Below the pieces are notes generated by a model. The model saw nothing but the letters and a program-made list of their open reading frames with translations. It ran no database searches and was not told the origin of the DNA. A stretch of 64,000 nt of DNA, from NCBI GenBank assembly GCA_965240325.2, contig OZ251223.1, positions 620,001 through 684,000 on the forward strand. The letters run 5' to 3'. Source of the DNA: Rebecca billardiae RCC1528 (taxonomy: Eukaryota > Protista > Haptophyta). Both the position numbers and the translations under genes were made by a program. Shown here in pieces: positions 33,126-45,943 of the stretch. How positions within the stretch are numbered: position 1 is the first letter of the stretch; every line of letters begins with the position of its first letter.

Positions 33126-33397
33126 CCTCCGGCGACGGCCGGCGGCCGCCGACGGGTAGACGGTCGGCGTCTCTACTCGGGGCCGGGGTTGGGCAAGGGA
33201 GGTGGTTGGGCGATAGACGGCGCGCCGTCGTCCAGCGGCCCGGATTCCTCCCGTCCGGTCCAGCCTGCGGAAGTCGCATCTTGGTCCGGGACCCGCGCCG
33301 GCGCCGCCGCCGCCCGGACACGAGCGCGCTCGCAGCAGGGTGTTATTAGTGCGCCATCCCTGACTTGCGACGGTTGCTGTTCTGTCGCGCTCGAGCG

Positions 33398-34339
33398 ATG
33401 AGCAGCAAGCTCGGGCTGCTCCTGACGTCCTACCTCGCCGGCGGCCAGAGTGCGGCCGAGAACGCCTCGTCGTACTTTGACTTGCCGACGTACATGATCA
33501 GCCTCCGCGCGAACTCGTACAACCGGCGCGTGATGGCAACAAAGCGCGCAAAGGAGGCGGGTGTTCGGCACATGGAGTTTGTGGACGCCGTGGACTACCA
33601 CGACACGCCGACGATGCGGTACTGGCTCGAAGGGCGCAACTTCTCGCACTTCAACTGCCCGCAGTGGCGCCATGGGCTGCTCGAGAAGAAGGTCGCCGTG
33701 TGGGCGTCGCACATGGTCGTGCTCGAGAAGATGGCGAAGCTGAGCACGCCCTCGCTCATGCTCGAGGAGGACATCGTGTACATGCCCGAGCCAAAGTCGT
33801 TCGCGCCGATCGCGAACCGGGTGCTCGAGTTCCTCCCGGACACCCACCTCTTCGAGTGGGACCTCGTCTTCTTCGGCAGCTGCGTGGAGGAGCTGCACAG
33901 GGTGACGCGCTGCCGGGAGGTCCGCTCGCACGGGCGCACGCGCGGCAACCGCCTGTGGCTGTCTCGCGCCTTCGCGCCGACGTGTGCGCACGGCCTGCTC
34001 TTCAGCCCGCGCGGCGCCGCGAAGCTGAAGCGCATGATGAGCGGCTGGGGCCCCATCTACCACGAGCGCAGCCTCAAGTTCACGAGCGCGCAGCCGCGCG
34101 TGTGCACTGACGAGGCGGTGCTCCAGCACCAGCGCAGGGGCGCGGGCAAGGCGGCGTTCCGCGAGCTCTACGCGGGCGACGACCAGGTGATCCGCACGGG
34201 CATCCTTGATGGGCAGGTGTACGCCTACGAGGTGTGGCCGATGCTCACAGAGCAGCTGCCGCGGCTCAAGATGGCGGCGTTCTCGTACGACCACAAAATA
34301 CCGCACGCGTGCAAGGCGGGGCAGCTGGTCGGACGGTGA
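33398..34339 (+). CDS. Glycosyltransferase family 25-like protein
   Basis: YMISL....RR, FVDAVD, SH, LMLEEDI, WDLVFFG, AHGLLFSPRGAAKL. Confidence 0.75.
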   Translation: MSSKLGLLLTSYLAGGQSAAENASSYFDLPTYMISLRANSYNRRVMATKRAKEAGVRHMEFVDAVDYHDTPTMRYWLEGRNFSHFNCPQWRHGLLEKKVAVWASHMVVLEKMAKLSTPSLMLEEDIVYMPEPKSFAPIANRVLEFLPDTHLFEWDLVFFGSCVEELHRVTRCREVRSHGRTRGNRLWLSRAFAPTCAHGLLFSPRGAAKLKRMMSGWGPIYHERSLKFTSAQPRVCTDEAVLQHQRRGAGKAAFRELYAGDDQVIRTGILDGQVYAYEVWPMLTEQLPRLKMAAFSYDHKIPHACKAGQLVGR

Positions 34340-34821: not shown

Positions 34822-35469
34822 ATGCGGAGCGTTGGGCTCCTCATCTCGATGCTCGCCTGTGTGGCGTCGGGCCTCAGGGTGAGCCCGGCACTCACCGCGC
34901 GGCGCGCGATTCGCATGATGTCTGGGCCAGACGATGACCTGCCGGCCATCTCGCAGGTGATGGGCACCGTGATCGAGAAGGGGTTTTCCGAAGGCAAGCG
35001 CGTCAAGTACGGCGTGTTCACAGAGTCCGTGGATCCGTCGAGCGTCCCCGCCGAGGAGGAGCAGCGCAAGCGCCGCGAGGATGCGGCCCGTGACCTTGTC
35101 AACATTGACATGCAGGAGCGTCAGCGCCGCACGGCCGTGGGCACGGCCGGCAGCGTGCTCACCGCCGCGCTAGGCGTCGGCCTACTCGCTGCGCATGCCC
35201 CTGTCGCCACGCGCTTTGCGATCGCGTTCCCGCTCTTCCTCTCCTACGGCTTTCTCGAGTCCGGGCGCACTGGGCTGTGAAACATCGGCCAGGCGAGCTA
35301 CTGGGACGTCGATGGCACTGGGATCCAGCGCATCACGGACTCGAAGCTCGCTAGAGCGCTCCTCGACAAGGTGAACAGCTTCAACGCGCAGACAGCGCGC
35401 AGGGTCGCCGTCCTCACTCTTGCGTACGTCATTCTCCCTGAGCTTCTCGCTCGGGCGGGCCTGTACTAG
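34822..35469 (+). CDS. Putative membrane selenoprotein (215 aa, Sec153 encoded by TGA 35278-35280), probably plastid-targeted
   Basis: Frame continues 62 coding-like codons past the TGA to TAG 35467-35469; SECIS in the 3'UTR; signal+transit peptide; 3 hydrophobic segments. Confidence 0.82.
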
Positions 35470-35553
35470 TACTACCAGATGGCCATGGCAGTATGGCAGC
35501 GATGCGACGGCCCACACACTGACAGTGGGGCCCTCGCGATCATGCCAAGGAGC

Positions 35554-35616
35554 TGCTGAGTCCATGACGGCGCGATGCGCAAAGCGAATGCATCGTACCT
35601 GACCTCATCCTCAGCA
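35554..35616 (+). promoter_or_regulatory. Eukaryotic SECIS element (type I-like)
   Basis: Helix I TGCTGAG/CTCAGCA; core ATGAC (35564) with TGAC (35600); helix II GGCGCGATGC/GCATCGTACC; apical AAA at 35581. Confidence 0.85.
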
Positions 35617-43138: not shown

Positions 43139-44287
43139 TCAGCCGCTCAGGTCGTCCAATACTGCGAGAAACCCTGAGCACGTGTGAGGACCAATGTGCG
43201 TCCCAGTGACGATGAGCAGCGCTTCCACACGAGGAAGAAGCATCGCCGCAAGCAGGCCCCTGGCAGCGACGACTCTTGTGGCGTATGCCATCCTCTGAAG
43301 GGGTAGCGTCGTGTACTCGCATCCGTTAATGGCAAATGAGGTTCCAAATGTCAATGAAGGATCTCGAAAGAAGTTCTCAATGAACGTGATGAGCTGCTCG
43401 CACTCCAGTACCGAGGGCTTCAGAGCATCGGTGGGATAGCTTACCCAGCTCTCCGCTTCCGTGACGACAATATCACGCTTGCGTTGTGCAAACAGGCACC
43501 GCTCGAGTGCAGCATGAACACTTCCGTCCGCAAGCGTGGCGTTCTTCCGCGCGGCGTCCTTCGCCAGCTCCAGTTGGCTCGCAATGTGCGCGGCACGCCC
43601 ACACACGAAAGCGTTCTCTGCCCCGCTCCTCTCCACGATGTGCATCAGCCAAGGTGTCCATTCTGCTTTCAGCGCCTCAAACCTCTGCTGCTCGCTTGCT
43701 TCACCGACGACCCTTGCCACGCGACAGCAACGATGATCCACGCATGTCAAAGTCGCAAGTGCCTTCGCGTCAAGGAGCATGTGAGAGAAGATGATGTGCA
43801 GTGCGTCGTCGTCCAGATTGCCAAAGCATCCCTGAACATCACTCGCCCCGTCGTACCGATCATCGGCCGCCATGGTGCCACTGTTTGGCATGCCTGGAGC
43901 ATCCAGGAACACAACCGAGATATCATCGGCGTCCTCCTCTGCGTCCTCGGCAACCAGCATAGGCTCGGCAGCGTCGAAGAACATGTGCTCGCCACCATCT
44001 TGCGCATCGCCCTCAGCGCGCGCCATGCTCGCCTCCTTGCCGGCCGCGTGTTCGTCATGCGAGCCGCCGGGCGGAGCAACGGGATCATCATGATGCTCGT
44101 CCGCATCCATGTAGCCGGACACGTACATGTTCTCCGCCTCGGGCTCCCCGGAACGATCGAGCACGTCGGACTCGTCGTCGTCAACCCCGTCGCCGGCAGC
44201 CGACGACGGACTCAGCGCGCCCGCCGCCGCGTGACCGCCGCCACCCAGCCATTGCCTGACACGTCCGAACAAGGTCAGCGCTGTCAT
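43139..44287 (-). CDS. Acidic N-terminus, F-box-like protein
   Basis: FGNLDDDALHIIFSHMLLDAKALATLTCVDHRC; ATG at 44287. Confidence 0.55.
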   Translation of the reverse strand: MTALTLFGRVRQWLGGGGHAAAGALSPSSAAGDGVDDDESDVLDRSGEPEAENMYVSGYMDADEHHDDPVAPPGGSHDEHAAGKEASMARAEGDAQDGGEHMFFDAAEPMLVAEDAEEDADDISVVFLDAPGMPNSGTMAADDRYDGASDVQGCFGNLDDDALHIIFSHMLLDAKALATLTCVDHRCCRVARVVGEASEQQRFEALKAEWTPWLMHIVERSGAENAFVCGRAAHIASQLELAKDAARKNATLADGSVHAALERCLFAQRKRDIVVTEAESWVSYPTDALKPSVLECEQLITFIENFFRDPSLTFGTSFAINGCEYTTLPLQRMAYATRVVAARGLLAAMLLPRVEALLIVTGTHIGPHTCSGFLAVLDDLSG

Positions 44288-44446
44288 CGTTCCCGCCCTG
44301 GTTCGGGAGAAGTCCGGCGTTTGTCGCTGCGTCCGTTTCGCTGCTGGAGCGGTCGTTCCTCCGCCCGCGGCGTATGGTACTTCGACGAAACGATGGAGTA
44401 GCGGTGCGGCACTGTCGCCTTCACAAGGACCCTGAGTATGGGGGCC

Positions 44447-45943
44447 ATGACGGACGGCCTCGCGGCCTCGCTGGTGGGCAAGCTCCGAGGCGAAGCCCTC
44501 GTCAAACTCGTCGCCCGTGTCGACGCCGACAGCCTCTTCCCGTTGGCTCTGACCTGCCGGGCGCTGCACGATGCTGCGCGCGCGTCGATTGCCACACCGA
44601 CGCTGGGCGAGGCGCGCTTCAGGACGTCGGTCGTGCCGTTTCTGCGCTCTACAGCGTGTTTGCAGTGGGCACGCGATGCCGGCTGCACCCTGGCCGACGC
44701 GAGCTTGTGCGCGCTCATCGCGCGATCTGGAGAGCTGCCCTCTCTGCAGTGGGCCGTGGCCAACGGCCACAAGTGCTCCTTGGCCGTCTGGGTCAACGCC
44801 GCCGAGCGTGGCCATGTCCACCTGCTCCAGTACGCGCGGAAGCACGGGTGGACATTCGACGAGAAGGTGTGCGCGGCCGCCGCGGCGAGTGGCCAGGTCG
44901 CAGCCGTGAAGTACCTTCTCGAGGTCGGCACGCCGTGGAACGCGGCCACGTGCGCGGCTGCGGCCAAGGCCGGAAATCTGGGCATCCTGCAGTACTGCCG
45001 CTCAGAGGGCTGCCCGTGGGATGCGGCGACGTGCACGAATGCTGCGGCGTCGGGTCATCTGGAGGTCCTCAAATGTACGCGCACCGCTGCACGGGCTGCC
45101 TGTCGACCGACCCCTTTGTGGCGCGCGGTGCGGCTCGGCAGTCGCGGGCTCACTCCGCGCCTCGCCATGCGCCCATGCCGTGCAGGGGCGCGCGCACACG
45201 GCTGCCAGTGGTCGGAGTGGACGTGCGCGTACGCCGCGCTCAACAACCACCTCGACATTCTCAAGTGGGCGCGGGCGCAGGGCTGCCGCTGGGATGAGCT
45301 CACGTGCTCGCATGCCGCCAGCAAGGGCAACCTGGAGCTGCTCAAGTGGGCGCACGCGCAGGGCTGCCCATGGGGTCCGTATACGTGCGGCATGGCCGCG
45401 GCCGGCGGGCACATGGAGACTCTGCGCTGGGCGCACGAGCAGGGCTGTCCGTGGGGGGCCTACACATGCGCCATGGCGGCCGGCGCAGGTCACCTCGACA
45501 TCCTGAAGTACTGCCTTGATCAGGGCTGCCCCATCAACGGCGAGGCGTCGGCAAACGCGGCCGCCGCGGGCCATCTCGAGGTGCTGGAGTATCTGCTTGA
45601 TCGCGGCCAGGATCTCGACAAGCGGGTCTGCGCAAGCGCCGCACGGCATGGCCACCTGCCTTGCCTCCAATTCGGGCGGCGGCACCTGGCGACAGGTTGG
45701 GATGCGTCCGTGTGCGCGGCGGCTGCGGCTGGAGGGCACCTCACCTGCCTCAAATATGCGCGCGCGGAGGGCTGTCCCTGGGACGAGTCGACCTGCTCCG
45801 CGGCGTCGAGGAATGGACAAACACATGTGCTCAAGTGGGCGATGGAACATGGCTGCCCCGAGCCGAAATCCTCGCCGTCCAGGCGAGGCAGCAGAGTTTC
45901 CGCGATTGCTGAAAGCGTCAATGCTCTGGGTGCTACGATTTGA
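44447..45943 (+). CDS. Ankyrin-repeat protein (GHLEVLKWA..GCPWD class); in-frame intron 45075-45185
   Basis: About 13 repeats of C..AA..GHL..L.W....GCPW; splicing restores LKWARAHGC; alternative ATG at 44438. Confidence 0.88.
   Translation: MTDGLAASLVGKLRGEALVKLVARVDADSLFPLALTCRALHDAARASIATPTLGEARFRTSVVPFLRSTACLQWARDAGCTLADASLCALIARSGELPSLQWAVANGHKCSLAVWVNAAERGHVHLLQYARKHGWTFDEKVCAAAAASGQVAAVKYLLEVGTPWNAATCAAAAKAGNLGILQYCRSEGCPWDAATCTNAAASGHLEVLKCTRTAARAACRPTPLWRAVRLGSRGLTPRLAMRPCRAGARAHGCQWSEWTCAYAALNNHLDILKWARAQGCRWDELTCSHAASKGNLELLKWAHAQGCPWGPYTCGMAAAGGHMETLRWAHEQGCPWGAYTCAMAAGAGHLDILKYCLDQGCPINGEASANAAAAGHLEVLEYLLDRGQDLDKRVCASAARHGHLPCLQFGRRHLATGWDASVCAAAAAGGHLTCLKYARAEGCPWDESTCSAASRNGQTHVLKWAMEHGCPEPKSSPSRRGSRVSAIAESVNALGATI

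Follow-up and report, generated by a model that had tools for sequence, protein, structure and literature searches.

Is the TGA at which gene callers end an open reading frame (ORF) on contig OZ251223.1 of the haptophyte Rebecca billardiae RCC1528 (assembly GCA_965240325.2) a stop codon, or is it read as selenocysteine (Sec)? We analyzed a stretch of 64,000 nucleotides of this contig (positions 620,001 to 684,000), hereafter the window, whose coordinates are used throughout. On its plus strand, an ATG at 34822-34824 is followed by 152 sense codons and by a TGA at 35278-35280; the same frame then stays open for 62 further codons and closes at a TAG at 35467-35469. An initial annotation of the window proposed that the gene encodes a 215-residue membrane selenoprotein with Sec at residue 153 and with a selenocysteine insertion sequence (SECIS) element in the 3′ untranslated region (UTR). 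The coordinates and peptides that it quoted for the extended frame are correct. We conclude that the selenoprotein call is right and that the family is not new, a verdict that is untouched by the further leads on function, location and fold described below.

The composition of the gene is the first indication. Upstream of the TGA, the GC content at the first, second and third codon positions is 0.68, 0.51 and 0.84, respectively; downstream, in frame, it is 0.63, 0.44 and 0.82; and beyond the TAG it becomes 0.51, 0.60 and 0.66. Since the in-frame periodicity persists past the TGA and vanishes beyond the TAG, the stretch past the TGA looks coding.

Relatives of the protein were sought with a profile built from two N-terminal pieces, those of the window protein and of P0002, which was scored against 1.84 billion representatives. 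P0002, a protein from an MMETSP transcript that ends at the identical SGL, was the only relative retrieved by a word-indexed homolog search. The profile recovered 348 relatives at E ≤ 1e-3. Approximately 130 of the best 150 stop exactly at the residue that precedes the TGA, which is the last position of the profile, and the public prediction for the window gene, P0001, is likewise cut short at the UGA; the correct product has 215 residues, including Sec153. Cys takes the Sec position in five relatives, namely P0116, P0131, P0142, P0143 and a protein of the diatom Mayamaea pseudoterrestris, P0157; in four others (P0013, P0020, P0058 and P0082), the residue given there is W. The W forms and P0116, P0131, P0142 and P0143 run on with NI[AG]QA..WDV[DE]G.G...DKVN.[FM]N, in agreement with the window tail. 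This W stands for a TGA that was translated with a different genetic code: we take it as TGA because TGA is the codon in the DNA of P0058 (locus L004), the sole W form that was checked directly, and in loci L002 and L003 of the cluster of P0020.

A metagenome scan added 80 loci, which brought the total to 85 with the window included. TGA is present at the Sec codon in 85 of the 85 loci; in most of them a conserved tail comes next that is 54-62 codons long, with up to 100 codons in a few. Where the full frame closes, the codon is TAA in 25 of the 55 distinct loci, TAG in 19 and TGA in nine, so that TGA is not reassigned to sense in these lineages. When relatives were compared with the window by tblastn, residues 9-221 of P0020 aligned to 34825-35451 (E 4e-43) and residues 61-229 of the Cys form P0142 to 34954-35457 (E 4e-32), each as a single high-scoring segment pair that spans the TGA. 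The tail past the TGA is 42-60% identical to that of relatives and the head 40-54%, i.e., the tail is at least equally conserved. The in-frame UGA is therefore matched by Cys or by another UGA in homologs, and the similarity flanks it on either side, which is the outcome that the initial annotation had put forward as support for its call; the opposite outcome, homologs that end at GL with no conservation downstream, is not what is seen. Splicing at the GT at 35277 was also considered and is not supported, as full-length relatives align collinearly through the TGA. Taken together, the comparisons make it very probable that the window gene is a genuine Sec gene of the family listed as Ostreococcus “hypothetical protein 3” (see below).

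The hairpin proposed as the SECIS element is present (Table 1) and lies 95 nt past the stop and 286 nt past the UGA. Helix I is formed by 35554-35560 paired with 35610-35616 (7 bp), the ATGA core occupies 35564-35567, helix II is formed by 35569-35579 and 35589-35599 with 10 pairs, the unpaired AAA is at 35581-35583 and the 3′ TGA at 35600-35602. The element was assessed by our own implementation of the primary SECISearch criteria (PMC2375036), which call for NTGA, for AA or CC 10-13 nt on, for GA 15-39 nt on, and for an energy of −12.6 kcal/mol or lower upon constrained folding. The window element passes, with AA 13 nt on, GA 18 nt on and a constrained fold of −21.2 kcal/mol; the unconstrained fold has −28.9 kcal/mol (z = −2.4). 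In the 3′ regions of relatives (55 distinct), SECIS-like elements were detected in 23 of 55 on the sense strand, in two of 55 on the antisense strand and in one of 55 after shuffling.

The background of such matches was estimated from both strands of the window (128 kb). The relaxed form ([AG]TGA with AA or CC) matched 23 times, so that ca. 0.1 matches are expected per 600 nt on one strand. The canonical ATGA...AA...GA form occurred twice, as the window element and as a match at 43733-43800 (+) that lies antisense within the minus-strand ORF 43139-44845. The latter has no candidate selenoprotein ORF upstream and is probably due to chance. An early strict scanner, limited to ATGA and ungapped pairing, matched three of 60 regions, the window among them. 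It also marked a SECIS-like hairpin at ~38564 (−), probably a by-product of GC-rich inverted repeats.

The SECIS-like elements of the relatives are diverse. In one clade (L006, L008, L010, L012, L013, L016, L024 and L057), CC stands in place of AA, with ATGA or GTGA as the core, and in several Ostreococcus-like loci a GTGA core is combined with AAA and a long mini-stem; the window element is the only clear type I structure among those found. When the elements of the relatives were aligned by MAFFT and RNAalifold, no consistent register emerged across the AAA-type and CC-type elements.

To which family does the protein belong? A selenoprotein of O. tauri and O. lucimarinus named “hypothetical protein 3” was printed by Lobanov et al. 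in 2007 (Genome Biol 8:R198; PMC2375036, Additional file 2), and its motif reads GLUNIAQAGVWDV[DE]G...DKVNDFN. The window protein has the corresponding G-L-U-N-[IV]-[AG]-Q and, further on, W-D-V-[DE]-G-x-G and DKVN.FN; its own string is GL-U-NIGQASYWDVDGTG...LLDKVNSFN. Besides this stretch (SAK.GL-U-NI[AG]QAG.WDV[DE]G.G and DKVN.FN), the two share GK.IY.GVF and LVNID..ER.RR; each has a hydrophobic helix at the C-terminus and only one Sec, which is placed alike, and each gene has its SECIS element in the 3′ UTR. The similarity extends over the whole module: the profile from the window protein and P0002 finds P0038 with E 2.5e-23, and P0038, by its N-terminus, as well as loci L027, L028 and L030, agrees with the printed O. 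lucimarinus sequence. Compared with the O. lucimarinus-type locus L027, the window protein is 45% identical in the head and 57% in the tail. The differences concern the setting rather than the module: the window copy comes from a GC-rich alga that apparently has a secondary plastid; the leader is of the signal-peptide type in the window and Arg/Ala/Thr/Pro-rich in Ostreococcus; and the SECIS elements there mostly have GTGA with long mini-stems, whereas that of the window is of type I with an ATGA core. Judged by these likenesses, the window protein is a clear member of an already described, functionally uncharacterised family, and the novelty that the initial annotation had implied does not hold. 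The family has been “hypothetical” since 2007, and its relatives still carry public names such as “hypothetical protein” (e.g., Mayamaea pseudoterrestris MPSEU_000878900). The 2020 algal selenoproteome survey (PMC7539508) has a “Hypo” group of hypothetical selenoproteins, which may include this family.

Two other groups of small membrane selenoproteins come to mind. MSP of algae and Dictyostelium is, like the window protein, a small multi-helix membrane selenoprotein of unicellular eukaryotes with no known function; it is a separate family in which Sec stands beside Cys within a membrane helix (VGS-U-CWP), and the Dictyostelium protein carries another Sec (Lobanov et al. 2007, PMC2375036). Its sequence is otherwise unrelated to that of the window protein, and identity with MSP was rejected since the window protein has neither VGS-U-CWP nor a Cys that adjoins the Sec. 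SELENOK and SELENOS are also small and anchored in the membrane, have a lone Sec, lack CxxU and are thought to depend on an external thiol; they cross the membrane once, and a disordered tail carries their Sec close to the very C-terminus. None of the searches made showed a similarity in sequence or fold between them and the window protein.

The predicted anatomy of the product agrees with the initial annotation in that hydropathy and predicted helices point to a membrane protein. The soluble module that follows the leader carries GK.[IV]..GV, D.S..P and, directly ahead of membrane helix 1, LVNID..ER.RR. Helix 1 is backed by hydropathy and helix 2 by long helices at matching positions in the AlphaFold model of the Cys form P0142, where the predicted local distance difference test (pLDDT) score is 80-94. 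The Sec comes next, and it is followed by the conserved loop NIGQASYWDVDGTG, with W161-G167 encoded at 35302-35322, by an amphipathic helix with LLDKVNSFN, and by membrane helix 3 (residues ~194-214, 35401-35463, by hydropathy). The Cys forms P0142, P0116 and P0157 have an additional C-terminal hydrophobic helix. The stretch WDVDGTG...I.D (W161-D172, 35302-35337, plus strand) bears a weak, not significant likeness to dockerin calcium-binding loops (PDB 4uyq, E 0.75), in which the fifth position is not conserved as a ligand. As the initial annotation had noted, the protein lacks CxxU and its mature chain is free of Cys; the sole Cys of the 215 residues, Cys13, is in the leader.

In the P0142 model (mean pLDDT 71.7, 80-94 across most of the core), the Cys that takes the place of Sec is located at the membrane surface, where helix 2 ends. 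A Foldseek search of the AlphaFold DB clusters matched the core, with probability 1.0, to DUF2892-named proteins and to the C-terminal membrane domain of fungal Rax1/RGS proteins. For the DUF2892-named matches A0A7C2R231 and A0A6B0GM69, the template modelling (TM) scores by hit are 0.79 and 0.68, and the root-mean-square deviation (rmsd) of the matches ranges from 2.0 to 7.6 Å. A shape search of the ESM Atlas retrieved small prokaryotic membrane proteins with TM scores by hit of 0.66-0.81, and one of the clusters is labelled YgaP-like_TM, a label carried by 94% of its members. The fold that would be shared with YgaP-like_TM/DUF2892 domains is a membrane helical hairpin with a following helix, and both sides of this comparison are predictions. 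The YgaP-like domain (DUF2892, PF11127; E. coli YgaP is a membrane-bound rhodanese) also has a conserved Cys just past helix 2; the window family differs from it by the N-terminal module, the WDVDG loop and the third helix. By hhalign, the only local alignment to YgaP places GLcNIg on GFCGMA, and thus the Sec on the YgaP Cys (E 0.09, probability <1%). The likeness of the three-helix core to YgaP-like (DUF2892) membrane domains is one of predicted fold alone. The same core, common to this family and the DUF2892 proteins, is found in the Rax1/RGS matches (A0A2T0FDI4, A0A2T9YX08, R4XGE3 and others); the closest of them superpose with an rmsd of 2.0-2.9 Å over 122-132 positions, as a predicted-fold match alone, with 13-24% identity and no Sec. 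A scan of prokaryotic genomes with the family motif retrieved no relatives, and no convincing match emerged from PDB, whether it was searched by sequence, with Foldseek or with VIA-align.

What might the Sec do? In P0008, P0016, P0021 and P0025, as well as in the fragment P0005, a glutaredoxin domain (PF00462, E 1e-15 to 1e-17) lies upstream of the module in the same ORF, with CPYC or CGYC as its active site. P0008, P0016, P0021 and P0025 represent one cluster each and are mutually less than 50% identical. At the fusion locus L088 (169-1065), the TGA is present after the glutaredoxin. This glutaredoxin fusion is not among the fusions described in the 2020 algal selenoproteome paper (PMC7539508). 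In another relative, P0133 (340 residues), a SnoaL_2 domain (PF12680, E 1e-11) is upstream of the module in place of glutaredoxin.

Because two membrane helices lie between the N-terminal part and the Sec, the fused glutaredoxin and the Sec should be on the same side of the membrane. Since, in addition, the mature chain has no resolving Cys, the most likely chemistry would be that of a one-selenol center at the membrane surface, active in redox reactions or chalcogen transfer and recycled by glutathione and glutaredoxin. A redox partner is proposed from the fusions of relatives because there is no glutaredoxin in or near the window gene, and we regard a glutaredoxin-coupled redox role as an evenly balanced prospect.

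The leader bears on where this would take place. In proteins imported into secondary plastids, F, W, Y or L typically stands at position +1 past the signal peptide. In many relatives, F, W or Y comes right after a signal peptide and leads into a transit-like stretch, e.g., SVHA|FAPR in Mayamaea, VVDA|FTPS in P0142 and AASG|WSAA in P0020; P0142 and P0157 have classic plastid leaders of the ASAFAP type, and further members, P0038 among them, have leaders rich in Arg, Ala, Ser and Pro. In the window protein, 17-residue segments that start at residues 1-6 reach a mean hydropathy of 1.5 or more, and the putative cleavage context is CVASG|LRVSPALTARR. Judged from these leaders, the window protein may be assigned to the plastid with moderate confidence. 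The plastid-type leader suggested by the initial annotation is thus plausible and agrees with those of relatives; its remark that such import would be unusual in a selenoprotein goes too far, given that two chloroplast-targeted Sec-type glutathione peroxidases have been described in Chlamydomonas (PMC3095285).

The leads can be combined into one picture. An intronless nuclear gene very probably gives a 215-residue precursor of a Sec-containing membrane protein, UGA 35278 being read as Sec153 under the direction of the type I SECIS element in the 3′ UTR. The protein would consist of the leader, the soluble module, a two-helix hairpin, the Sec at the membrane surface, the WDVDG.G loop with the amphipathic helix, and a third membrane helix; it would reside in the plastid with the Sec toward the stroma, an arrangement in which location, membrane orientation, redox partner and substrate are all conjectural. 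Here the fusions point to glutathione and glutaredoxin as the reductant, the leaders to the plastid and the predicted fold to DUF2892. That all of this holds together, i.e., that the protein is a stromal-surface, single-Sec plastid-membrane protein recycled by glutathione and glutaredoxin and at the same time a Sec-using eukaryotic offshoot of the YgaP-like membrane-Cys domain, is a tentative proposal that we hold to be rather doubtful as a whole. If true, it would provide the first functional handle both on a selenoprotein “hypothetical” since 2007 and on a widespread domain that lacks an assigned function. The Cys forms, glutaredoxin fusions, leaders and predicted fold are new leads from this analysis, and the Cys forms, one of a diatom included, might be expressible without the Sec machinery.

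Several observations weigh against this picture. The window protein has no glutaredoxin domain, and no glutaredoxin exon is present anywhere in the window. Leu, not Phe, follows the putative cleavage site. Kinship with DUF2892 at the level of sequence is not significant (hhalign against E. coli YgaP or an enterobacterial YgaP alignment, E 0.09-0.17), and Pfam, PF11127 included, gives no match at E ≤ 10 for the two pieces of the window protein and, with E ≤ 1 as the limit, none for the Cys and W forms, while E. coli YgaP itself scores 7e-08 with PF11127. Helix II of the SECIS element carries two mismatches, a C·U beside the core and a C·A, its AA is at the ceiling of the allowed distance (13 nt), and the Rfam SECIS models do not report the element in the window even at E ≤ 10. 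The silence of Rfam counts for little because the same models also miss the elements at loci of relatives that plainly decode TGA.

Among the alternatives, the one that concerns chemistry is possible, if less likely than glutaredoxin coupling. Here the Sec would not be recycled by glutaredoxin; it would bind a metal or a selenium or sulfur species, or handle anions or persulfides in the manner of YgaP, and the DVDG.G...D loop would hold a cation. The predicted fold speaks for it, since YgaP-like domains accompany rhodanese sulfurtransferases, as do the DVDGTG..I.D likeness to dockerin loops and the SnoaL_2 fusion in P0133; against it stand the glutaredoxin fusions, spread over at least four clusters with mutual identities below 50%, and the fact that the likeness to dockerin falls short of significance, with the fifth loop position not kept as a ligand.

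A location other than the plastid is likewise possible, if less likely. The family would still be one of selenoproteins, residing in the secretory pathway or endoplasmic reticulum or in mitochondria, and the leader would be a mere signal peptide or a mitochondrial presequence. This would fit the Leu after the putative cleavage site and the start codon of the window gene, which is a predicted one; moreover, Arg/Ala-rich leaders of the green-algal type, taken alone, would fit either plastid or mitochondrion. On the other hand, many relatives show the hallmark of import into secondary plastids, a signal peptide, then F, W or Y, then a transit-like stretch, and the sites of the diatom Cys forms P0157 and P0142 are textbook ASAFAP-like ones.

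That the protein belongs to a previously undescribed selenoprotein family is very improbable and already refuted: the lack of a Pfam match, full-length Cys forms included, of a PDB relative and of an informative name in public protein sets would agree with it, but the architecture and motif printed in Additional file 2 of Lobanov et al. (2007) are the same, and a neighbor cluster in the ESM Atlas is auto-named “Selenoprotein family protein”. Least of all, and with practically negligible probability, could the TGA be an ordinary stop of a 152-residue protein with a chance open frame and hairpin downstream, as the truncation of P0001 by gene callers, the silence of Rfam and the frequency of relaxed SECIS patterns in GC-rich DNA (23 per 128 kb) might suggest, since this reading is already contradicted by the codon bias that continues past the TGA, by the TGA and conserved tail in all 85 loci, the tail being 42-60% identical to relatives, by Cys forms that translate straight across, and by the sense-strand enrichment of SECIS-like elements.

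The features of the gene are collected in Table 1.

Table 1. Features of the Sec gene and its 3′ region, in window coordinates.
Feature	Position	Strand	Description
N-terminal leader	34822..34926	+	Residues 1-17 hydrophobic, signal-peptide-like, ending in CVASG; residues 18-35 Arg/Ala-rich, transit-like, from LRVSP
Conserved soluble N-terminal module	34927..35130	+	Invariant columns among relatives; motifs also in printed Ostreococcus sequences
Membrane helices 1 and 2 (predicted hairpin)	35131..35268	+	Residues ~104-126 and ~129-149
Sec codon TGA, residue 153 (very probable)	35278..35280	+	Motif G-L-U-N-I-G-Q immediately past membrane helix 2
Post-Sec coding region	35281..35469	+	Loop, amphipathic helix, membrane helix 3 and TAG; based on GC content at third codon positions (0.82), tail identity and hydropathy
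SECIS element, type I	35554..35616	+	Helix I, ATGA core, helix II, apical AAA; 3′ GA at 35601-35602

Upstream of the gene, the neighboring plus-strand ORF 33365-34339 (324 residues) weakly matches PF01755, glycosyltransferase family 25 (E 2.7e-05), and barely clears the curated cut-off.

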